DNA of 63,930 bases, filler included, from Octopus bimaculoides (Eukaryota), in assembly GCF_001194135.2 (NCBI RefSeq). It is 6 parts of 6 records of this genome, joined end to end, with 100 filler letters (N's around TTAATTAATTAA, not from the genome) between each part and the next. Parts side by side here need not be neighbours in the genome. Positions count along the whole stretch, not along the records: positions 48,816 to 59,710 come from NC_069010.1; 5 more parts are not named here. The stretch is one strand, 5' to 3'. The number at the start of each line of letters is the position of its first letter. The first letter of the stretch is position 1. A program made the translations under genes and the position numbers. Under the pieces are notes generated by a model. It was given only the letters and a program-made list of their open reading frames with translations, was not told where the DNA came from and ran no database searches. Positions 15,135 to 59,710 of this stretch are shown in pieces.

Positions 15135-16538
15135 GATCAATATAAACCACTCTGGGAGCATTCTGTTTTTGCTTCATGTGTTTGTATTGACATTATTTAA
15201 AACAAGTCTTGTTATATAAAACAAGTCTTTTTTTCCTTCTAGTGAATGTCAAGGGATATAATTGTGCTTATATGATGTTATCGTTTGTTCTTTTTTTTCC
15301 TCCTGTTTTCCTCCTTGTCTAGTTAACAGACATATTGTTGGTTAGCCAGTATAACTTTCTCACTAACCACTTAGCTTTCACACAGGCTTTTATTGGATTA
15401 CTTTTTACAAAGTGTTTCAACAAACATAATGCATATTATTTCTCCATTTTTTCTCAAAATATTTTTTCCCTTTCTCTTATTTAATTTCCTTTTTTTTTAA
15501 ATTTTTGCTCCCATCTTCTTTTGTCTTTCCACAAGACTATCCTTTACATGTTTTGCAGAATGTTTTGTTATAATTATTCCATGTTAAAGACATTACAGTC
15601 GCCACAGGAAGGCAGGGGAAGAGGTCTCTCGTTTTAACATTAGCAAGAGCCTCTCTCTTTTCCTAAATGGCTATTTAGAAGTTAATGATGGCCTTCCAAA
15701 CTGCATTTTGTTCAGAGTTCTCATCTCTTTAAAAATATTTCTTGTCTTTGTTAACTACAAAGTATTTAAGTTATTCTGGATTCCTTTTTTTTTTTTTTTT
15801 TTTTAATATTCTATTAGCTCGTTACAAATTAAATTAAATGATTAACTGTCCCTATTGTTCTTTAGATTCTTCTTTATGGTTAAATGGTCTCCAGAATAAA
15901 AGTATTGTCATATTTGACAATAATTTTGCTTGGTGATATTTTGATATTTTCTTTGTTAAAGTATCAGACAGTCTTAGAAAACTGAAGGGACAGAAGACAA
16001 TGGAGAGAATGGTTTGATCAGGAAACATTAACAGCATTAGATGCCCTTTTTTTTAATAAACGTCTGGCAAGTAAAACTGGGATGGGTTAATAGTCTAAGG
16101 ATAAAAAAACCTTCCTTTTAGTTGAGAAAAAGAGTTAAGGGAAGTTTGTTAGTTTTTGGTGGCTAGAGGCTGGAATTTACTTTGAATTTTTTGACTCACC
16201 GTAATATAGAAAACATGTTTAGATTGTTGATGATAAAAATGTGGTCTGGTCATGTGGTGTGTGTGAATTAGTACATATACTTGTGTGGCATTACAGTATC
16301 AGCAGTGGTAGATAGGGTATGTTGTTCTTTAGTACATAGTATTGTGTGAGTTTGATAAAAGATGAAGTAGTTGTTTGTTATTGTATGGCCCTGGATCAGC
16401 CATGGTTCATGATCCCTTTGATCAGAGGTCTTCCAACTGTGGCTGCTCAATATTGTTTTTGCAGCTACTATGTATCTTCATCAATGCATCCTTCATTTTT
16501 TTCCCTTTTGTCTTTAAAGAGAAAAGTGTTTGATTTAA

Positions 16539-16747
16539 TCCTTTAGCATTTAAACACATCTGGCTCAAATATTATTCCTGTTTTATGTTCAAACTAGCCA
16601 GATCTGGTGTCTCACACCTACCCTACAATGTCAATCTAAAAATAGACATCATCAAAATCTCAAAGCTATGAGATAATTTATGATTAAATCAGAACAATGT
16701 GAATAAATAATCATTATATTTGGTGGAGTAATCTGAAGGCTAAAGGG
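16539..16747. mobile_element. piggyBac-type MITE
   Basis: TTAA|TCCTTTAGCATT ... GGCTAAAGGG|TTAA. Confidence 0.78.
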
Positions 16748-17093
16748 TTAAAGGAGATTTGGCTGCTATTTCTAACAGTTCAAGTGATAGCATTGAAACT
16801 AAGTAGTTGTGTTGTACCACACAATTACTTCAACCACAACTTGTGTTGTTTAGTACATAGTATTATGTACTTCAAATAGCACCAGACTCTTCAAATATTA
16901 TCACCCTGCCTGTGCTTTTGTATGCAAGTGAGATGTAGGCTGCTACGAAGAGGACAGAACATTGATTGGCCACAACATAAAGAGCCATGGAAATATTCAT
17001 GCTAAGAATATTAAGAGAGCACATTCAAAATGAGATAATTCAACTGCAGTCTGATGATGGCTTAGCTGAGTGAAACTTCAAAGTCCCTAGGTG

Positions 17094-17475
17094 CAAGGGT
17101 GGCTGTGTGGTAAGAAGCTTACTTCCCAACCACGTGGTTCCAGGTTCAGTCCCACTGCGTGGCACTTTGGGCAAGTGTCTTTTACTATACTATAGTCTCA
17201 GGCTGACCAAAGCCTTGTGAGTGGATTTGGTAGATGAAAACTGAAAGAAGCCTGTTGTATATATATACATATATGTATTTGTGTGTGTGTTTGTTCCCCC
17301 ACCATCGCTTGACAACTGATGTTGGTGTGTTGACTTCCCTGTAACTTAGCAAAAGAGACTGATAGAATAAGTACTAGGCTTACAAAGAATAAATCCTGGG
17401 GTTGATTTGTTTGACTAAAGGCAGTGCTCCAGCATGGTCGCAGTTAAATGACTGAAACAAGTAAAAGAATAAAAG
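17094..17475 (+). mobile_element. Full-length SINE family A copy
   Basis: Same head, central microsatellite and tail as 7397-7845. Confidence 0.85.
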
Positions 17476-48815: not shown

Positions 48816-49409
48816 GTGCGGGTGGCACATAAAAGACACCATTTCGAGCGTGGCCGTTTTCGTGCGGGTGGCACATAAAAGACACCATTTCGAGCGTGGC
48901 CGTTTTCGTGCGGGTGACACGTAAAAACACCCACTACACTCTCTGAGTGGTTGGCGTTAGGAAGGGCATCCAGCTGTAGAAACTCTGCCAAATTAGATTG
49001 GAGCCTGGTGCTGCCATCCGGTTTCACCAGTCCTCAGTCAAATCGTCCAACCCATGCTAGCATGGAAGGCGGACGTTAAACGATGATGATGATGATGATG
49101 ATGATGATTGTGGATTGGTTGGGGGCTGATGAGGGATCAAAAACTTATTATATACGCCCATTACCAATTTTTCATCTTCGACCTCATTCTTGTTTACATC
49201 AGGCATCTCTGATACAAAATGTCATAACTAAATCAGTGCTGGCTATAATTTCTTTTGAAAATCTATTGAAATAACCTGAACAAGTGATGGAATAGCACTG
49301 CCATTAATGCTAATGCATTCAAACAGTGAACCTCATGACCACGCTACAAAACTAATTTAGTTCTCTTAATTAAACAATTTAAAAAATGAACCAGCTCAAC
49401 AAATAAGTA

Positions 49410-50615
49410 CAAGGGTGGACTGAAAAGATCAAAGGCTGACTATGAAGGAGTATTGCTGGAGGTCTTGCATGCCTTTATTTCAACTCTGCATATTAATAAC
49501 TGCCTTGTTTCCGTTCAGGAAAACTGACATCTGACTGTTCAAAGAAGACTTCAAACGCAACAACTTTTCTCAAAATTAGATAAAATGTGCATCATGTTAT
49601 AATCACGTACCTTCAGAATAAGGCTTTAGCCCACATGGGCGTTCATGCTGACATAATTGCTACATGACAGGATGACGTTCCAGCTTTATCAACAATGCAA
49701 AAGTGGGCAGCTGAATTTAGGAGAGTCTTGAAGTTGACCTAATGTATGGACATCCTACAACTGCCACCAACAAGGAAAACATTGATCATGTTCACCACAT
49801 GTTGATGAACAACAGGCGATTGACTATAAATCAAATAGCCCATGTTATTAGCATATCCCTTGAGAGAGTTGAGAATGATCTGAACAACTTGGCACAATGA
49901 AGGTTTATGCTCAATGGGTGCCGCACCTTCTGACACCTGATCAAAAGTGCTGTTCGCACGGCAGGAAAATCTGACATTGTTTGAGGCTGATTCACCTAGT
50001 CTCCTTGAATGTTTTGTAACCCATGATGAGGTGTAAGATTCATCTAAGACATAGAGACAATCTTTGCAGTGGAAACATCCTTCCTCACCTGCTTGAATGA
50101 AAACCAAGGTCATTTCATCTGCAGGAAAGTTGATGGTCTCAGTTATTTGATATCAAAACGCTTTGTGTTTATCGACTATTTTCAGAAGGGCCACATTTTC
50201 AATGAAGAGTACCATAACAGCTTGCTGAAGCAGTTAACAAACACCCAGAAAAACTAATGAAAGGGTTCTTCTTTCATCAGGACAATGCTCTAGCACACAT
50301 ATCCTTGCTTTCAATGGCTGCTGTGCATGACTATAGCTCTGAATTGGTTGATCGCCCTTCCTATTCTCCTATTTTGGTTCATGAAAAACACGTGGCTAGG
50401 AACCAGTATCGCAGTGATAATGTGGTCATATCTGCTGTTGATGACTTTTTTGACCATGGGATGAAAGTATCTGCACCAATGGGATCCGAGCATTGCAATA
50501 CCAATGGAATAGTTGTATCAAGCGTAAGTGGGGACTACATTGAAAAATAAACCTCATTTGGTTACATTCTATGAGAGTATTTTGGTCAGACTATAAACTT
50601 TTCAGCCACTCCTCA
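49410..50615 (+). mobile_element. Full-length degenerate mariner DNA transposon
   Basis: Imperfect TIRs (caagggtggactgaaaagatc... / ...cttttcagccactcctca) flanked by TA. Transposase remnants WAAEF, WVPHLLTPDQK, FVTHDE, FHQDNALAH, PSYSP with stops and frameshifts; about 1.2 kb. Confidence 0.92.
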
Positions 50616-50654
50616 TATTTATTGCATGAACAACCTCAAAAGTCACTGCACACC

Positions 50655-50689
<35 letters not shown>

Positions 50690-50793
50690 TACATATATAT
50701 ATATATAAATTCTCTGTTGAACGTATACAAGAATGTTACAATTTTATAAATTCAAATTACTGAAATTTATTAAAATATTTGTTGATTAATCAG

Positions 50794-50906
50794 GTATTGA
50801 TGAAATAATGGCCAAATATGTCGCGCACCTCCTTCTTAAAGACCCACTCAATTTACGTAAAGAGAAAATTGATCAAGACATTTTCAAAGATTCTGGTCAT
50901 ATTCAG
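50794..50906 (+). CDS. GCLC-like: GCLC-like internal exon (G-IDEIMAKYVAHLLLKDPLNLRKEKIDQDIFKDSGHIQ)
   Basis: taatcag acceptor; CAG|GTAAAA donor; 113 nt (2+37 codons). About 18/38 identities by hand to recalled human [38 protein letters not shown]. Confidence 0.9.
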
Positions 50907-51358
50907 GTAAAATATTTTGGTTCAATATTGTTATTTACAAATAAATTAGTGAGATTTATAAAAAAATAACATGATAATGCACTAATTCCTTCCTTGGTTT
51001 CTTGACATTGGCTGGAGACGCAGGAGAACAAGTCATGATATACAATGTTTAGAGAATTTTAGATTTGGCGGAACCCACCCTTTCTAGCTGTAATTACAAT
51101 GGATTTCTTCCTGACACACAGACAGTTTCGCAAACAGAGAAGAATCTTCCCTAATATTGGTTTCAAATTTTGGCACAAAGCCAACAATTTTAAGTAGGAG
51201 GATAGTCGATTACATCAACCCCAGTGTTCAACTGGTACTTATTTAATTGATCCCGAAAAGATGAAAGACAAAGTCAACCTCGGTTGAATTTGAACTCAGA
51301 ATGTGAAGACAGACGAAAAGCTTAGCACCTACTTTCATTTCTTACCAATATGCCATAA

Positions 51359-51590
51359 GGGCGGCGAACTGGCAGAATTGTTAACATGTCGGGCGAAATG
51401 CTTAGCGATATTTCATCTGCCGTTATATTCTGAGTTCAAATTCCGCTGAGGTTGACTTTGCCTTTCATCCTTTTGGGATCGATTAAATAAATACCAGTTA
51501 TGCACTGGGGATCGATATAATCGACTTAATCTCTTTGTCTTCCTTTGTTTGCTCCCTCTATGTTAAGCCCCCGGTAGGCAATAAAGATTT
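51359..51590 (+). mobile_element. Second tRNA-type SINE family (family C) with a gcctttcatccttt...gtcgataa central motif
   Basis: ggcggcgaactggcagaat...ttctgagttcaaattccgctgaggttgactttgcctttcatcc. Related copies at about 14255-14420 (-), 19790-19950, 33310-33510, 51200-51320 (-), 52150-52350 and 52910-53050. The central motif resembles Nin/Deu-type SINE domains (recalled). Confidence 0.75.
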
Positions 51591-51611
51591 TAAAATAATA
51601 TGCCATAATTA

Positions 51612-52138
51612 CTATATATACTCGGAGATAGGTAGCACATATTTTACCCAAAATTTCAATAAAAATCAGGGGTGTGACCTATCCACTAGACATCACAAAG
51701 ATTTGAAGTAGACAGCGGTTTATCAGCTCTCCAGAAGAATGTTCGAGTTTCAATCCTGATGAAGTTTAATTACGATATCTAATGAATAAACACTTTTCTT
51801 ATGTAACGTTTTTTCTGTTCTGTTTGTAATTTTAGATGCTTTTCTTGTCAAGTTGATATTTATTGATTTTTTTTCGTCGAGTTGATTTATCCATTAGAAT
51901 ATTTTCATGAAGTCACTTCTACAAAAATGTTTTAATAATTGTTTGCAAAGTTTTGAAATAAAGGTGAATATTTGATACTATTCAACAAATATTAGTTATA
52001 TTTACATTAAAAAGGGTCAAGTAACTCCCCAGATTATAGTGTGATCTATCTGTGAGATAACCGCAAATACCTACTTCAGCAACCCCAAACTAAGGGCACA
52101 ACCTATCCCTAGTGCAATCTATCCATGAGTATATATGG
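51612..52138. mobile_element. TA-flanked MITE (Tc1/mariner/pogo-like ends)
   Basis: TA|CTATATATACTCGGAGATAGGTAGCAC versus the reverse complement of GTGCAATCTATCCATGAGTATATATGG|TA. Confidence 0.6.
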
Positions 52139-53300
52139 TAAAAAGAAACTGTAGAATTGTTAGAATGCCGGACAATATACTTAGCGGCATTTGTTCCGAC
52201 TCTCTACGTTCTGAGTTCAAATATCAGCAAGGTTAAATTTGCCTTTCGTTCTTTCAGTGTCTTTGAAATAAGCACCAGTTATACATTGAGGTCAGTGCAA
52301 TTGACTTACACTCTCTCCTAAAATTGCTGACCTTGTGCCAAAATTTGAAACCATTTTCATTGCTTCAATGAAGGCATGGCTGTGTGGTAAGAAGCTTGCT
52401 TCCCAAACACATGGTTCTATGTACAGTTCCACTGTGTGGCACCTTGGGTAAATGTCTTCTACTATAGCCTCGGGCCAGCCAAAGTCTTGTGAGTGGATTT
52501 GGTAGACAGATGGTGTAAGAAACTTGACACATATATCTGTGTGTGTGTGTGTGTGTGCGTGCATGCACATGTCTTTGCGTCTGTGTTTGTCCCACGCCAC
52601 TGCATGACGACCAGTGTTGGTGTGTTTATGCGCTGGTCACCCAGGAGAAGTGACCGATAGAATAAGTCACCAGACTTAAAAAATAAGTCCTAGGGTCAAT
52701 TCATTCGACAAAAATTCTTCGACCCAGTGCCCCAGTATGGCCGCAATCTAATGACTGAAACAACTGAAAAATAAGAGATAAAAGATAAACATAAAGAATC
52801 TTTAGAATTCAGTTAAACATCAAAATTTATTAACAAAATGTGTTAGAGTTGTAACATTGATAATATTTTAATATGATATTAATATGATTTAAATATAATA
52901 TTGCTAGCATACCAAGCGGAATACTTAGCGGCATTTCGTCCATCCTTATGTTCTGAGTTCAAATTCCACCAAGGTCTTGAGTACTGGTGTTAATATAATT
53001 GACTTAACTCCTCCTCTGAAATTCTTGAACTTGTGCTAAAATTTGAAGCTGATATTAAATGACTAAACTCTCTTTATCGAAGCATACCAAACAATCAAGC
53101 CCCATAACGTCTGCAATAGATAATTCTGGGCATTTCAGTTACTGTGATCTTGAATGCAATAATGTTGTTTAAATATAAAGCATTCGTAGAACATGTTGCA
53201 GCCTTTAATCTTATTTTGTTGTCATAAGAATGTATTTTTTGAAACATGAAGACTTATTAAGAAATAGGATCATAGGGTTAATGGTTACAATATTTCAATA

Positions 53301-54760
53301 CATCATCATCATTATCACCATCATTGTTTCACGTCCGTTTTTCATGCTTGCATGGGTTGGAAGGTTTGACTGAGGTCTGGAAAGCCAGTGGCTGCACCAG
53401 GCTCCAATCTTATCTGGCAATGTTTCTACAGCTGGATACCCTTCCTAACGTCAACCATTCTGAGAGTGCAGTGGGTGCTTTTTACATGCCACTGGCACAG
53501 GAGCCAGCCAGGAGGCACTGGCATCGTCCACATTCGGATGGTACGTTTTATATGCCACCAGCATAGGAGCCAGTCAGGTGGCCCTGGCATCGATCACGTT
53601 CAGATAGTGCTTTTTACATGCCACTGGCATAGGAGCCAGTCAGGGGGCACTGGCATTGGCCATGTTCAGATGGTGCATTTTACATGCTGTCGGCACAGGA
53701 GCCAGTCAGGCGAACCTGGCATTGACCACGTTTGGATGGTGCTTTTCATGTGTCACTGGAATGGGAGTCAGTTAGGGGGCACTAGCTACAGCTACGATTT
53801 TGGTTTTACTTGACTCAACAGATTTTCTCAAGCATATTATATCACCCGACGCTTCAAGGGGACTTCTAAATGGCATCGGCCATGGCTGTGATCTCATTTT
53901 AGTTACCCGGTCTTCTCAATTACAGCATATCTCCAAAGGTCATGGTCTCCTGTCATTGTCTCTGTGAAGCCCAACGTTCAATGGTCATGCTTCACCACCT
54001 CATCCCATGTCTTCTTGGGTCTACCTCTTCCACAGATTCCCTCAACTGCTAGGGTGTGACGTCTCTCTGCACACATTTGATGCTTCTTATGTCAAACTTT
54101 TCTCTCATGGTGCTTACACTCTGTCGTGTATGCACACTGATATTATACATCCAGCGGATGATGCTAGCTTCATTTCTTTCAAGCCTACGCATGTCCTCAG
54201 CAGTCATGGCCCATGTTTCACTGCCATGTAGCATGGCAGTTCACACACATACATCATACAGTCTACCTTTCATCATGAGCAAGAGACCCTTAGTTGCCAG
54301 TAGAGATAGGAGCTCTCTGAACTTTGTTCAGCCTATTCTTATTCTAGCCGCTACACTCTCAGAGCAACCACCCCCACTACAGACTTGGTTGCCTAGGTAG
54401 CGGAAGCTATCAACTACTTCTAGATTTTTCCCCTGGCATGTGATTGAATCTGTTTTCTGTACATCTTCAGTGTTTATTGCTCCTGTGCATTTGCCACATA
54501 CAAAAACTATCTTCCTGGCTAACTTTGCTTTGATATTGCGGCACCTTTTATGTGTCCATAACTTACAACGGGTACATCATAGGGAGTTTCTATCAACACC
54601 TTTTCTACAGATTGAGCAGGCTTTCTCCAAGTCAACAAAAGCCAAGTACAGAGGTTTATCTTTGGCTAGATATTTCTCATGCAGCTGTCTTACCAGAAAT
54701 ATAGCATCAGTGGTGTTTCTGCCTGGCACAAAACCAAACTGCATCTCATCTAGGCTAAGT
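53301..54760 (-). mobile_element. 5'-truncated, internally deleted RTE-clade LINE with 3' UTR and (GAT)n tail
   Basis: Minus-strand RT motifs LDEMQFGFVPGRNTTDAIFLVRQLHEKYLAKDKPLYLAFVDLEKA and LHGSETWAMTAEDMRRLERNE..., then a 3' UTR with 66-bp tandem units ending in gatgatgat. Confidence 0.88.
53470..53785. repeat. About 4.5 copies of a 66-bp tandem unit inside the RTE 3' UTR
   Basis: Unit approximately ggtgctttttacatgccactggcacaggagccagtcaggcggcactggcatcgaccacgttcggat; appears as a 22-aa repeat in the 53388-53813 ORF. Confidence 0.85.
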
Positions 54761-54853
54761 CTCGGGGGCGTAAACACAGCAACATCGATTGTCAAGGGAT
54801 GTTGGGGGGACAAACACAGACACACAAACATATACACACATACATATATATAC

Positions 54854-54888
<35 letters not shown>

Positions 54889-55649
54889 CGACAAGCTTCT
54901 TTCCGTTTCCATCTACCAAATCCACTCACAATGCTTTGGTCAGCCCAAGGCTATAGTAGAAGACACTTGCCTAAGGTGCCATGCAGTGGGACTGAACCCA
55001 GAACCATGTGATTGGGAAGCAAGCTACTTATCACACAGCCACTCCTACGCCTACAATGCAAAACAATATCTGATATCTTCTACTTGTTTCAGTNNNNNNN
55101 NNNNNNNNNNNNNNNNNNNNNNNNNNNNNNNNNNNNNNNNNNNNNNNNNNNNNNNNNNNNNNNNNNNNNNNNNNNNNNNNNNNNNNNNNNNNNNNNNNNN
55201 NNNNNNNNNNNNNNNNNNNNNNNNNNNNNNNNNNNNNNNNNNNNNNNNNNNNNNNNNNNNNNNNNNNNNNNNNNNNNNNNNNNNNNNNNNNNNNNNNNNN
55301 NNNNNNNNNNNNNNNNNNNNNNNNNNNNNNNNNNNNNNNNNNNNNNNNNNNNNNNNNNNNNNNNNNNNNNNNNNNNNNNNNNNNNNNNNNNNNNNNNNNN
55401 NNNNNNNNNNNNNNNNNNNNNNNNNNNNNNNNNNNNNNNNNNNNNNNNNNNNNNNNNNNNNNNNNNNNNNNNNNNNNNNNNNNNNNNNNNNNNNNNNNNN
55501 NNNNNNNNNNNNNNNNNNNNNNNNNNNNNNNNNNNNNNNNNNNNNNNNNNNNNNNNNNNNNNNNNNNNNNNNNNNNNNNNNNNNNNNNNNNNNNNNNNNN
55601 NNNNNNNNNNNNNNNNNNNNNNNNNNNNNNNNNNNNNNNNNNNNAACTG

Positions 55650-56030
55650 CAGCCATGCCGGAGCACCGCCTTTAGTCAAACAAGTCGACTCCAGGACTTA
55701 TTCTTTCTAAGCCTAGTACTTATTCTATCGATCTTTTTTGCTGAACTGCTAAGTTGCAGTGATGTAAACTCAGCAACATGGATTGTCAAGTGATGGTGGG
55801 GGGACAAACACCGACAAACAAACAAACATATATATACGCCGGGTTTCTTTTAGTTTCCATCTAACAAATCCACTCACAAGGCTTTGGTCTGCCCAAGGCT
55901 ATAGTAGAAGGCACTTGCCCAAGCTTCCACACAGTGGGACTGAACCCGGAACTATGTGGTTGGTAAGCAAGCCACTTACCACACAGCCACTCCTGCACCT
56001 ATATATATATACACACATACATACAATGGG
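55650..56030 (-). mobile_element. SINE family A copy, minus strand
   Basis: Reverse complement of the family A consensus; further minus-strand partial copies at about 28380-28540, 35480-35650 and 54762-55055. Confidence 0.8.
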
Positions 56031-56367
56031 CTACTTTCAGTTTCCTTCTACCATATCCACTCACAATGCTTTGGTTGGCCCGTGGCTATAGTAGAAGACA
56101 CTTGCTCAAGGTACCACTCAGTAGGTCTAAACCTGGAACAATGTATTTGGGATGCAAATTTCTTACCACACAACCACTCTTGTGACTATATATAAACATT
56201 AAAGCTAGTAACATTAGATAACAAGTGTTTATTACAGTCTTCAAAGGTCTCCTCAGTTTGGGATGTGTTACTTAAAATATTGTTATTTCTTTAAATTTAC
56301 TTTACTTAATTAAATTGTAATGTATGTTCTATATTCATGACCAGGGCTGTTACACATTTCCTTTTAG

Positions 56368-56454
56368 GCTATCTTTAATAGTAATGGACACAGCTTAAAA
56401 TTGAAACTCCCTGATGAGAAATCTGGATGGAAAGTGGAATTCAGAACAATGGAG
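56368..56454 (+). CDS. GCLC-like: GCLC-like internal exon (AIFNSNGHSLKLKLPDEKSGWKVEFRTME)
   Basis: catttccttttag acceptor; GAG|GTAACA donor; 87 nt, phase 0/0. GWKVEFRTME matches GCLC GWRVEFRPME; the first half departs from NIQSTNWQTMRFKPP. Confidence 0.9.
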
Positions 56455-57179
56455 GTAACATTTTATTAGGAACTGTTTTTGTATTAGATATTTTGTATCA
56501 GATATAGTTTCAGTTCCTGTATAAGAAAGGTTGCTGAAAATTCCTGATTTTGGGTAAAAAGAAGATACAGGAGGATCAATTAATTATGATTTGATTCAAC
56601 ATATTCTCCTCTCAGATTCATATACTTATTGCAGCAGTCCTTCAGTTTTTCTAAGCCCTGTAAAAGAACTTGCAAGGTTGGGCCTCCAACCAAGCCTTTT
56701 GCAGTACCCTTAAAAACAAGAACTTCTCAGCGCCCCCTCATAGTTTCAACAAAATTGGGCTGATAATACATCTTGGGCCTCCACTGCATATCTTCATCCC
56801 CGGTTGTCTTGAGCTGGTCTTGCTACTGGATTGAAGTTGAAGGTGGTCATAGACGAGAAAATGAGGCTGACAATGCACAATTCTTTTTCAACAAAATCAC
56901 CATGCAAGTCATTGATCCTCCATAAGGATGACTAGGCAGTCCTTGTCACTCCAATGGACGAACATAGTTTAGGAGTAATCATGTGGATGGTGAGTTTGCT
57001 CTTCAACCATATGGCTTTGAGTTCAATCCTCCTTAAAGATACCTGGAGAAAGTGTCTTCCAATAGTTTGGTGTTGTCCAATACTTTCAGGGTAGAATTTG
57101 GTGTACACTTTCAATGGTATCAGTCACTGGACTCTGGTCAAGCTGGAGCAACTAACTGTACATTGGAATTCCTCCAATA

Positions 57180-57683
57180 ACGATAAACAGGGCCTTAAGT
57201 TGAATTCAGATGGCTATGTAAAGCTGCTGGGGACTGGTCAAACCTTGGCTGAAGGGGATTATTACTAGAAGCCCATATGTGTGGCTGCAGGATTCGATTC
57301 CTTACCGTACCAGCTCAGAGTCAGAAGTGGTTCCTGGAGAATTTCTAAAACTTCATCAGCTCCAATTTTTGTCCCCCTATTTCCCCAGATTGTAATCCTA
57401 TGTGTGGGGCTCAATTGAAGAAGACACTAACCATTCTGCTTGTAAAGCAAGGCCGAACTGGAAGCCAACATGAGGAAGATGGCCAAAGAATGCATGCACT
57501 GCGTTCCAGAGCCATCTTGAGGCCATGTTGGAAACTGAGGGTGACTGCCTTCAGTAAATTTTTATCTCCCAGCCATAATCTAGTTGATTTTTTTTTATTT
57601 CTGAAAATGCTTTTATTTTTGGATGGGATATTGTGGCTTCTTTTCCTTTTATGCAAACTGTCAAGTTTAGCCTGAACACCCAA
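57180..57683 (+). mobile_element. 3' fragment of a maT/Tc1-like transposon (same family as 31250-31692)
   Basis: Remnant GLKLNSDGYVKLL..KPWLKGII...YVWLQDS...SQKWFLENF; clear nucleotide similarity to the 31250-31692 copy, including the 3' end. Confidence 0.7.
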
Positions 57684-57718
57684 TAAATTTCAACAATGTT
57701 TTTTTTATGTATTTCCAG

Positions 57719-57823
57719 GATCAGTTGACTGACTTTGAAAATGCTGCGCTTATTGTATTCCTTATTCTTCTTAACCGAGCTATAGTTACTCTCAAGCTAA
57801 ACCTTTTGATCCCAATAACAAAG
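57719..57823 (+). CDS. GCLC-like: GCLC-like internal exon (DQLTDFENAALIVFLILLNRAIVTLKLNLLIPITK)
   Basis: T-rich tract + tttccag acceptor; AAG|GTAAAT donor; 105 nt, phase 0/0. About 20/35 identities by hand to recalled human [35 protein letters not shown]. Confidence 0.92.
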
Positions 57824-58519
57824 GTAAATATTGATTTCTTATATTAAAATGTTTATTTCTATATAATAAGCATTGAACTTTTTTATCTGTAAGATAAATA
57901 TAAGCTGAGATTTGAGTGGTCAGTTCTTTGCTGGTGTCATCAATCATTTGTTGAACCCCATTCATATTAGTTGGCTTTACATTACGATACAGTGATTTCT
58001 ACCACAAATTTGATTGGTCAGTTGTTTGCCAACGTCATCAGCCTCTTATAAAATCTTGTTCACCTCTTTACCTTTCTACACAGTATTTTGGGTTGGATTG
58101 CTAGGGAATGACTTGATGCTAAGATCTCAAATCGTTTGTGGGGCAAGAACAATCACAAACATAAACACACGCACACGTATACATAAGAGTGCTTCTTAGT
58201 TAATTTGCCAAGATCTATTTGATCTCCCTTTGTATTATATATATGTATATAGTGCACTGTTCAGTGATGGTGAGATTAACAAAAATAGTGCTCCATCTAT
58301 CAATATCTATATTTTATGTGATGAAAGCATGCCAGAAGAGTTTTTTTAATATATCTGGTGTCTCAGCGCAATCTTCAGGCACTACTCACATGGCATAACA
58401 AACTAAAATTAAGATGATAGGATGAGAAAAAAGTGAGAAAAGGCAAGAAAGAAGTAGATATAAAAAATGGTGAGTTGAAAAACTGGAAAAAGGCAAAGGA
58501 AGAGAAACTAAAGTTATTT

Positions 58520-59300
58520 CTCCTTTGACTAAGGCTGAAAAGATAGTGGCTTTGAGCTTGTGGTACAGCTGCTCAATTCAGAGAGGGTGGTACTTTCCGT
58601 TTCATCAACAAAAGCTTAACCATATGATTACAACAACTGAAAATTTTGGATTTACAATTCAACAGTGTGTTAAAGTTCTTAGATCTGAAAAGGATCTAAG
58701 TTCTTTCAGCTATGCATATCTTAACACACTGTTTAACTGTAGATCTGAAATTTTCAGCAGTTATAAGCATATAGCTAAGTTCCTGATGAAATATTATTAG
58801 GGACTGTACACAATTTTGTTTTTCCAGACGGGTCAGTGTCCTATTTTTGATAGACAAGGCATTCTTTAATCTTATTGATACCAATTTTCTTTTTGTGGCA
58901 ATTCTTTGTTCTATGATACAAACCTTGTGATTTTAAGATATTTTCATTTCAATATATAAAATACTCTGTCTATGTGTGTTTCCTCAATGCACTCTTAAAT
59001 CTCTGGAGGGAACTTCTTTCATTGAAAATTCTCAATAACAAATTAACTGTTTCATCAAAACAAATCTCATCTGGTTTCTTCAGAAGAATATAGTTACAAT
59101 ATTTTTCATGTTCGGGAGGGGATAACCTTCTTCTCACCATTCCAATTTCTACATTCTTCTTTGAATATTTCTTCATGTCTTCTAAAATATGCAGAAAAAG
59201 TAGTACCTTCTTCTGGGTTATAAATAACTTCTCCAATTGAATTTGCTATGTTGTCTGATGAGAACAAACCTGAAGTGTTTTTAGACTTCTTTAACATTAC
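58520..59300 (-). mobile_element. Gypsy-type LTR retrotransposon gag relic
   Basis: Frameshifted minus-strand IANSIGEVIYNPEEGTTFSAYFRRHEEIF and LSPPEHEKYCNYILLKKPDEICFDETVNLLLRIF, matching the gag N-terminal motif of K02A2.6-like Gypsy elements (recalled). Confidence 0.7.
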
Positions 59301-59710
59301 TTCCAGTAACTATTGGGATTGTTGTTGTAACTGCTGTTTTTGCAAGTTAAAAACATTCCCAACAATTCAACTTCTCTGGTTGACATTAACACCCCCACCC
59401 CCAATAGGGGCCTTAACTCCTACATTTTTCAGCTCCAAGAGCTCCATTCTTCATGAGCAAAATCCTTTTTACAGGGTCCATAACACTAGAATTTTTGAAT
59501 ATGCGCATAAATATCAGATATATAAAGATGAGAATATGTGTCTGTGTGAATCCATAAAACTCGAGAACTACACAACCAATTTCATTTGAAATTAACACAT
59601 GCCTTCACTCATCTGGGAAGGCCTTGAAATCAATGTTACCAACTGGGGACTATATGTGTCGCAGTGATAATAAAAAGACTGAAAGGAGGTCTGCAGCGAA
59701 ATAATTTTAC

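Follow-up and report, generated by a model that had tools for sequence, protein, structure and literature searches.

An octopod-specific paralogue of glutamate-cysteine ligase's catalytic subunit with a rebuilt active site in Octopus bimaculoides: a candidate ligase with changed substrates

Glutamate-cysteine ligase (GCL) has a catalytic subunit, GCLC (EC 6.3.2.2, PF03074), that is normally a single-copy, extremely conserved housekeeping enzyme. Here, we describe a diverged GCLC paralogue of Octopus bimaculoides. Three of its exons lie at positions 50794-57823 of the stretch of DNA that we analysed, hereafter the window (63,930 nucleotides of assembly GCF_001194135.2, consisting of six parts joined with filler). 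An earlier reading of this DNA, made from the sequence alone, had proposed an intact GCLC paralogue with a remodelled active site, possibly a new gamma-glutamyl ligase. The gene is intact wherever it is sequenced, and residues that hold both amino acid substrates in the canonical enzyme are replaced while the metal ligands are kept. We estimate at roughly 45% the probability that the protein is an ATP-dependent ligase with changed substrates and not a gamma-glutamylcysteine synthetase.

Residue positions follow yeast Gsh1 and were rebuilt from an alignment to chain 3ig5_A. In the canonical enzyme, three Mg2+ ions are bound by E50, E52, E96, E103 and E470 (PMC5613772, Table 3, section 2.8). K451 touches the ADP phosphate, R472 touches the gamma-carboxylate of glutamate, and the hydroxyl group of Y362 bonds the glutamate alpha-carboxylate. 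The NE1 atom of W445 bonds the cysteine carboxylate, and this is the only side chain listed as doing so (PMC5613772). In a homology model of the Leishmania enzyme, where Arg481, Lys483 and Arg494 correspond to R449, K451 and R468, the counterparts of R449 and R468 touch the ribose of ADP (PMC5613772).

Exons in the window and the altered active site

The three exons lie in a gap-bounded contig of CM046630.1 (GCA_001194135.2), window 48816-59710, which equals 39039-49933 of L002, the O. bimaculoides locus, and about 897,306-908,200 of CM046630.1. On the gap-free orthologous locus of O. sinensis, L003, the gene maps to 16 exons, and the window carries exons 10, 11 and 12, all on the plus strand. 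Exon 10, (G)IDEIMAKYVAHLLLKDPLNLRKEKIDQDIFKDSGHIQ, spans 50794-50906 (acceptor tcag/GT, donor CAG/gtaaaa) and equals amino acids 361-398 of the O. sinensis orthologue. Its first glycine is a phase-1 split codon, made of the G that ends exon 9 (...GCT GAA G/gt) and the GT at 50794-50795. The exon contains the changes H409Y, F414L, R416K, F437I and E438Q, and H412 is unchanged. Exon 11, AIFNSNGHSLKLKLPDEKSGWKVEFRTME, spans 56368-56454 (acceptor ttttag/GC, donor GAG/gtaaca). It contains Q441F, S442N, T443S, W445G, R449K, P452L, R468K and a 2-residue deletion, with N444, K451, G466, W467, E470, F471 and R472 unchanged; the W445G codon is found at 56386-56388 (SNGHS). Exon 12, DQLTDFENAALIVFLILLNRAIVTLKLNLLIPITK, spans 57719-57823 (acceptor ttccag/GA, donor AAG/gtaaat). 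Here V476D is common to three Octopus orthologues, and Q477, D480, F481, E482, N483, A485 and R495 are unchanged.

Joined, the exons encode 102 amino acids that match the Pfam family GCS (PF03074, E=1e-30) and show 100% identity to two RefSeq models of this gene, XP_014788601.1 (P0184) and XP_052834018.1 (P0295), annotated as 'GCLC(-like)'. The sequence-only reading had described three spliced, phase-compatible, stop-free exons, and the canonical AG/GT sites and the match to the annotated gene bear this out. A tBLASTn search with full-length relatives identified no further GCLC exons in the piece 48816-59710.

According to sequence and species content, the paralogues form six Octopus lineages, A to F, and one Argonauta paralogue; the window gene is lineage F, the most derived of them. 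We aligned them with yeast Gsh1 and 186 canonical eukaryotic GCLCs, a diverse set in which the motif encoded by the window is almost unchanged, and found 109 columns with an invariance of 93% or more among the canonical sequences. Canonical molluscs differ at 0-1 of the 109 positions, the paralogues at 16-22, and the lineage F protein of O. sinensis at 22. Many of these changes are family-wide, i.e. present in nearly all paralogue lineages, with one or two lineages keeping the canonical residue at some sites. They comprise C266S/V, H409Y, F414L, F437I/L, E438Q, Q441I/F, S442G/N/A, T443S/M, R449K, P452L, R468K, S511T and the 2-residue deletion after KLKLP. The window gene carries the resulting octopod signature, HIQ...KLKLP(2-aa deletion)GWK[IV]EFRTME with H409Y and F414L, and falls within the octopod clade. 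Other changes are specific to lineage F (G263S/C, L286F, R313A, R361G, R416K, W445G, V476D, and also Q441F and S442N), and this lineage, unlike its sisters, keeps H412 and V469. Lineage E has W445T. R313A in exon 8 (L002 32653-32775) and Y362F in exon 9 (L002 35860-36003) both lie outside the window, as does R361G.

The substitutions named in the sequence-only reading are all present (HFE>HIQ, QSTNWQ>FNSNGH with its Trp>Gly, RF>KL, WR>WK and the 2-residue deletion). Its claim that K451, E470 and R472 persist is correct, and its yeast numbering of W445, R449, K451, R468, E470 and R472 agrees with the 3ig5_A alignment. Its picture of a remodelling of this one gene needs to be divided: the Trp>Gly change belongs to lineage F itself, together with R313A, R361G and R416K, but HIQ, KLKL, WK and the deletion are common to the octopod family. 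W445 is the residue that bonds the cysteine carboxylate, and R449 and R468 line the nucleotide site in the homology model, not the cysteine site. The substitutions are not common in canonical invertebrate GCLCs, where Haliotis and Aplysia have the human-type motif. In the canonical set W445 is tryptophan in 183 and tyrosine in 3 of 186 sequences, and arginine is found at R449 in 186/186, at R468 in 185/186, at R313 in 181/186, at R361 in 184/184 and at R416 in 185/186.

Compared site by site with the canonical enzyme, lineage F has all five Mg2+-binding glutamates (E50, E52, E96, E103, E470), and the other sites are only partly canonical. At the nucleotide site K451 is kept and both arginines, R449 and R468, are lysines. 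At the glutamate site R472 and E52 are kept, Y362 is phenylalanine and R313 is alanine; R313 corresponds to R366 of the T. brucei enzyme, which we take to bind the glutamate alpha-carboxylate. At the cysteine site W445 is glycine, and the orthologue still has E96. Every lineage retains D49, E50, E52, E96, E103, Q268, T270, Q272, D311, W314, R324, H436, N444, K451, G466, W467, E470, F471, R472, E482 and N483. Judged from these residues, lineage F keeps the metal, ATP and acyl-phosphate machinery, and is without both hydrogen bond donors to the alpha-carboxylates (Y362, W445) and without several invariant arginines.

Membership in the GCS/GCLC superfamily is clear from the PF03074 match, from the alignment of the full-length orthologue with 3ig5_A (E=1e-77) and from the predicted fold. 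The AlphaFold2 model of the O. sinensis lineage F protein has a mean predicted local distance difference test score (pLDDT) of 77.8, with 10-residue block means of 72-94 over the window residues, and a predicted template modelling score (pTM) of 0.85. It shows the GCL fold, and its best match in the PDB is the yeast GCL 3ig5, with a TM-score of 0.82 and E=7e-34.

A conserved catalytic core and fold would also be expected of a glutamate-cysteine ligase isozyme, perhaps with altered kinetics, glutathione feedback or GCLM dependence, that supplies extra or tissue-specific gamma-Glu-Cys. This is plausible for lineages A-D, because W445 and R313 are kept there. For lineage F we consider it improbable: the protein lacks W445, the sole listed side chain bonding the cysteine carboxylate and never glycine or threonine in the 186 canonical sequences, R313, R361 and Y362 are lost as well, and the same genome has a normal canonical GCLC.

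Gene integrity, selection and origin of the family

In the RefSeq models of the O. bimaculoides gene, exons 1, 3 and 13 are missing and filler such as 'VNIDF YVFSIYCTKSRIVLFSCQ' is present, as could be expected of a decaying duplicate, a pseudogene whose open exons are chance survivors. However, there are 17 N gaps at the locus (CM046630.1:858,268-932,948), and by flanking collinearity every absent exon maps into one of them. Exon 1 maps ~2.9 kb upstream of L002 10810, in the gap 6040-8629, exon 3 between L002 15559 and 17867, in the gap 15560-17239, and exon 13 just upstream of L002 55667, in the gap 49934-55508. XP_052834018.1 reads past the exon 12 donor ('VNIDF', window 57824-57838) and then splices to the filler exon 'YVFSIYCTKSRIVLFSCQ' (L002 59548-59604), which replaces the true exon 13 (VDENFTSAQKRDAINKEKFHFRKD); the latter lies in the gap of 5.6 kb that immediately follows the piece. 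Comparable filler is found in the older model XP_014788601.1.

All 13 sequenced exons of the O. bimaculoides gene are open, free of the stops and frameshifts that the sequence-only reading had named as a possible objection, and the ancestral introns are retained. The O. sinensis orthologue (P0297) is a complete open reading frame (ORF) of 607 amino acids. Between these two species lineage F has a synonymous divergence (dS) of 0.110 and a nonsynonymous divergence (dN) of 0.023, i.e. a ratio omega of 0.21 over 485 codons, and lineage C has an omega of 0.24. The amino acid identity between orthologues is 94.7% for lineage F, 90.6-93.0% for lineages B, C and D, and 96.3% for canonical GCLC, for which the comparison is of identity only. 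The derived lineage F residues are identical across the three Octopus orthologues. The gene is real, selectively maintained and under purifying selection, as are all the Octopus paralogue lineages since the expansion, and the earlier claim of an intact gene that keeps the catalytic core (the Mg glutamates, K451 and R472) holds. Decay of the duplicate is very improbable and largely refuted by these observations.

Two features of the gene models concern the exon content of the family. The O. sinensis lineage F gene has two copies of exon 15, at L003 43765-43902 and 46278-46415, with 85% and 89% identity to the protein, from which the isoforms X1 and X2 with differing C-termini apparently arise. 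Four independent models of various paralogues and species (P0175, P0176, P0179, P0295) skip exon 3, where the Mg ligands E96 and E103 are encoded. For lineage F of O. bimaculoides the gap explains the skip, and in the O. vulgaris models either the annotation or true alternative splicing could be the cause.

As the sequence-only reading had supposed, the gene is a paralogue and not the only GCLC of its genome. Separate canonical genes are found in O. bimaculoides (P0300, XP_052823647.1, on a 147.8-Mb chromosome) and in O. sinensis (P0183), on chromosomes other than that of the paralogue. When 1.84 billion representative proteins were searched exhaustively with a profile, one cluster stood out, P0009 from O. 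vulgaris (E=5e-68), and the next match was canonical GCLC (1e-39). A search with P0009 returned 'GCLC-like' proteins from O. vulgaris, O. sinensis, O. bimaculoides and Argonauta hians, and then the canonical octopus GCLC at 50% identity. Lineage F consists of the window gene and its orthologues in O. sinensis (XP_029652703.1/704.1, P0297/P0181) and O. vulgaris (CAI9742280.1, P0298). The other lineages are A (P0009/P0172), B (P0291/P0294, GenBank QHX41528.1), C (P0174/P0304, with XP_029652730.2), D (P0309/P0177) and E (P0308/P0176), and the Argonauta hians paralogue is P0178.

In a neighbour-joining tree of 569 ungapped columns with 200 bootstraps, the paralogue clade is monophyletic (100%) on a stem branch of 0.376. 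It is nested within the cephalopod canonical clade (98%) and is weakly sister to the octopod canonical genes (58%). Octopus A-F have the Argonauta paralogue as their sister (92%), and the terminal branch of lineage F is the longest. The introns of the canonical O. bimaculoides gene are at identical positions (...DHFE/NIQ..., ...RPME/IQL..., ...ISK/VDE...), therefore the family arose by duplication of a cephalopod GCLC at the DNA level; an origin as a retrocopy is ruled out by the same introns. The family changed rapidly along the stem branch and then expanded to about six Octopus lineages.

The paralogues are on one chromosome in O. vulgaris and in O. sinensis. Lineage F is ~3.7 Mb from lineage C in O. 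sinensis, and is on a separate chromosome record in O. bimaculoides. The accessions of lineages E, A, C and D are consecutive in O. vulgaris (CAI9741796-799), which indicates a tandem core cluster, and lineages B and F are at other places on that chromosome. Lineages C and D of O. bimaculoides are tail to tail, ~3.4 kb apart, on CM046627.1 (L006 38848-45410, minus strand).

The last exon was compared at L002 64514-64678, L003 46839-47003, L005 ~45778 and L006 ~35257. The synonymous difference (pS) between lineages F and C is 0.14-0.20, no higher than the 0.14-0.17 between orthologues, although the proteins have an overall identity of only ~70%, which points to gene conversion between the paralogues at their 3' ends. 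Conversion with the canonical gene, considered for a near-identical C-terminal block, is ruled out by a pS of ~0.7. An unplaced 17.3 kb O. bimaculoides scaffold, LGKD02085907.1 (L001), starts inside a partial, lineage-A-like paralogue of four exons (P0001) that is 73% identical to the 102-aa window peptide; its orthology is uncertain, because it has only 84% identity to O. sinensis lineage A over 124 amino acids. In O. bimaculoides and in O. sinensis, a gene for a collagen/C1q-domain protein of 435 amino acids is nested on the opposite strand within the canonical GCLC gene (L004 54444-59012, minus strand).

Gastropods, bivalves and other taxa outside the octopods gave single canonical GCLCs and no member of the family. 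For decapodiforms, no named proteome is among the matches listed, and the sole candidate is an unnamed Logan transcript (P0312). The family is found here only in octopods (Octopus spp. and Argonauta), a restriction that is not proven against squids. This distribution bears on the earlier suggestion that such a gene encodes the ATP-dependent gamma-glutamylhistamine (gamma-glutamylamine) synthetase activity of gastropod neurons. The loss of the carboxylate-binding tryptophan would suit an amine acceptor, and our literature search gave no gene assigned to the activity. However, Aplysia, Biomphalaria, Pomacea, Lottia and Haliotis have single canonical GCLCs with an unaltered HFENIQSTNWQTMRFKPPPP motif, and the best gastropod matches, with ~43-45% identity to the paralogue, are canonical. 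A gene restricted to octopods therefore cannot encode the gastropod enzyme, and we give this identity next to no probability; an analogous amine-conjugating activity in octopus is possible.

Candidate activities of the lineage F protein

If our reading as a ligase with changed substrates is right, the lineage F protein would still run the Mg-ATP-dependent activation of a carboxylate, followed by attack of an amine, and its recognition of the alpha-carboxylates of L-Glu and L-Cys would no longer be canonical. With this recognition lost, it would therefore be a ligase whose acceptor, and perhaps also its donor, has changed. The most obvious change would be at the acceptor, where Trp>Gly would remove the carboxylate contact and open space; the donor may have changed too. 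A possible acceptor would be an amine or a larger amino compound without a free alpha-carboxylate.

Several observations weigh against a working ligase. Five near-invariant arginines are changed, therefore the protein could be a very poor enzyme or none. Mutation of R366 to alanine in TbGCS, the equivalent of R313A, reportedly raises the Km for glutamate more than 100-fold. Structural constraint could account for part of the conservation of the Mg ligands. In the O. bimaculoides copy, exons 1, 3 and 13 lie in gaps and are unread; E50, E96 and E103, encoded in gap-hidden exons, are taken from the O. sinensis orthologue, and E52 (IEY) is found in the sequenced exon 2 and E470 (EFR) in the window. 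The RefSeq and ENA gene models and the lineage B GenBank entry QHX41528.1 are the only hints of transcription.

The main alternative is a non-catalytic derivative, i.e. a pseudoenzyme, a regulatory or a structural protein, in which the GCL fold is kept for binding or scaffolding and the ligase activity is lost. R313, R361, R416, W445, R449 and R468, each kept in at least 97% of the 186 canonical GCLCs, are all replaced in lineage F and Y362 is phenylalanine. In addition, the paralogues lack the canonical C-terminal tail of ~40 residues, and their multi-copy array and long stem branch are often found in recruited enzymes. However, a pure scaffold needs none of the five Mg glutamates, D49, K451, R472 or Q268/T270/Q272, which are kept in every lineage and species examined, and the arginine changes at the ATP site are conservative (R to K). 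We regard a non-catalytic protein as rather unlikely, but as the explanation that a ligase with changed substrates has to be compared with first.

For the family as a whole we propose, tentatively and with considerable doubt, that octopods evolved a private set of ATP-dependent ligases, about six in number and derived from GCLC, which link glutamate or a related acid to non-cysteine acceptors, the acceptor of the W445G/R313A member being bulkier or without an alpha-carboxylate. Octopus tissues hold biogenic amines such as octopamine, tyramine, histamine and serotonin in bulk, and these four are candidate acceptors, together with thiol-histidine and DOPA-derived amino acids. We know of no gene for the assembly of adenochrome. 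This compound of Octopus vulgaris is an iron-binding peptide with an ovothiol-type unit (PMC4768315).

The gene itself is not new, being already modelled in RefSeq and ENA as 'glutamate--cysteine ligase catalytic subunit(-like)'. In our literature search we found no paper describing the octopod family, the remodelled site or its function, and the database label 'glutamate--cysteine ligase catalytic subunit' probably misdescribes at least lineage F. A normal gene kept next to about six diverged but constrained copies, with a rebuilt acceptor and nucleotide pocket and in one case without the cysteine-holding tryptophan, points to new chemistry or to a non-enzymatic use of the GCL fold. A family of non-cysteine ligases, if true, would be a new branch of enzymology on the GCL scaffold. 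The family offers concrete proteins for expression and assay, for instance XP_029652703.1, and candidate genes for orphan octopus metabolites.

Intron content of the locus and comparison with known systems

Intron 10 (50907-56367, plus strand) is collinear with O. sinensis L003, with 86-88% identity on both sides of an assembly gap of 551 N at 55094-55644. To the left of the gap, window 54564-54758 aligns with L003 29286-29469 (88%), and to the right 55646-58128 aligns with L003 31151-33654 (88%), in the same order and on the same strand. The O. sinensis interval that matches the gap, L003 29470-31150, is ~1.7 kb of intron. Because the flanks are collinear, and because no homologue, whether canonical or paralogous, has residues between those of exons 10 and 11, the gap hides intron only. 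Intron 11 spans 56455-57718 on the plus strand.

Compared with the orthologous O. sinensis intron, intron 10 contains an O. bimaculoides-specific insertion of ~2.2 kb (52371-54563), inside which a 66/132-bp tandem repeat is found at 53474-53783. Just downstream of the insertion is an ORF fragment similar to a reverse transcriptase, 'FGFVPGRNTTDAIF...YLAFVDLEKA' (54577-54912, minus strand), its motif judged by eye. Copies of a repeat resembling a short interspersed nuclear element (SINE), with the translated motif '...HSQCFGWPKAIVEDTC...', are located at 52292-52600, 54799-55090 and 55783-56195; the set includes a 187-bp tandem pair at 55847-56194 and AT/ACAT microsatellites at 54820-54889. The SINE-like repeats flank the N gap and are the likely reason for the assembly break there. 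Intron 9 contains a degenerate mariner-like transposase remnant, also judged by eye (49686-50550, '...GHPTTATNKENIDHVHHMLMNNRRLTINQIA...' and '...FHQDNALAH...'). This insertion is old, because the region is 87.7% conserved with the O. sinensis intron. Pfam scans of these transposon-like intron ORFs, reverse-transcriptase-like and mariner-like, gave no match. A 46-bp tandem repeat (2.5 copies, 95% matches) is found at 48816-48931, at the left edge of the contig, and abuts the preceding assembly gap.

The closest known system is canonical eukaryotic GCLC, represented by XP_052823647.1, human GCLC and yeast Gsh1 (3ig5/3ig8/3lvv/3lvw), with which lineage F is homologous over the full length. The two have in common the 16-exon structure, the intron positions, the predicted fold, the five Mg ligands, D49, K451, R472 and the LQVTFQ and QLTDFENAA motifs. 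Unlike the canonical enzyme, lineage F has ~50% identity to the octopus canonical protein, has the 22 of 109 near-invariant positions changed, including Y362F, has the 2-residue deletion in the RFKPPPP loop, and is without the C-terminal tail and part of the Cys-rich insert. With lineages A-E and the Argonauta paralogue it shares HIQ...KLKLPDEKSGWK[IV]EFRTME, H409Y, F414L, C266S/V, S511T and the truncated C-terminus.

Mammalian GCLC makes gamma-Glu-X when cysteine is limiting, so a GCL active site can ligate glutamate to acceptors other than cysteine, which is the type of reaction that we propose for lineage F. There, it is promiscuity of an unaltered enzyme, whereas here the acceptor pocket is mutated and the change is fixed in a dedicated paralogue. 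The S-crystallins of cephalopods, a multigene family derived from glutathione S-transferase (GST), offer an analogy only, also for the non-catalytic reading: there, too, a glutathione-pathway enzyme was expanded to many copies in one lineage and its active-site residues were altered. Unlike them, lineage F retains its metal and ATP ligands, and the two families are not homologous.

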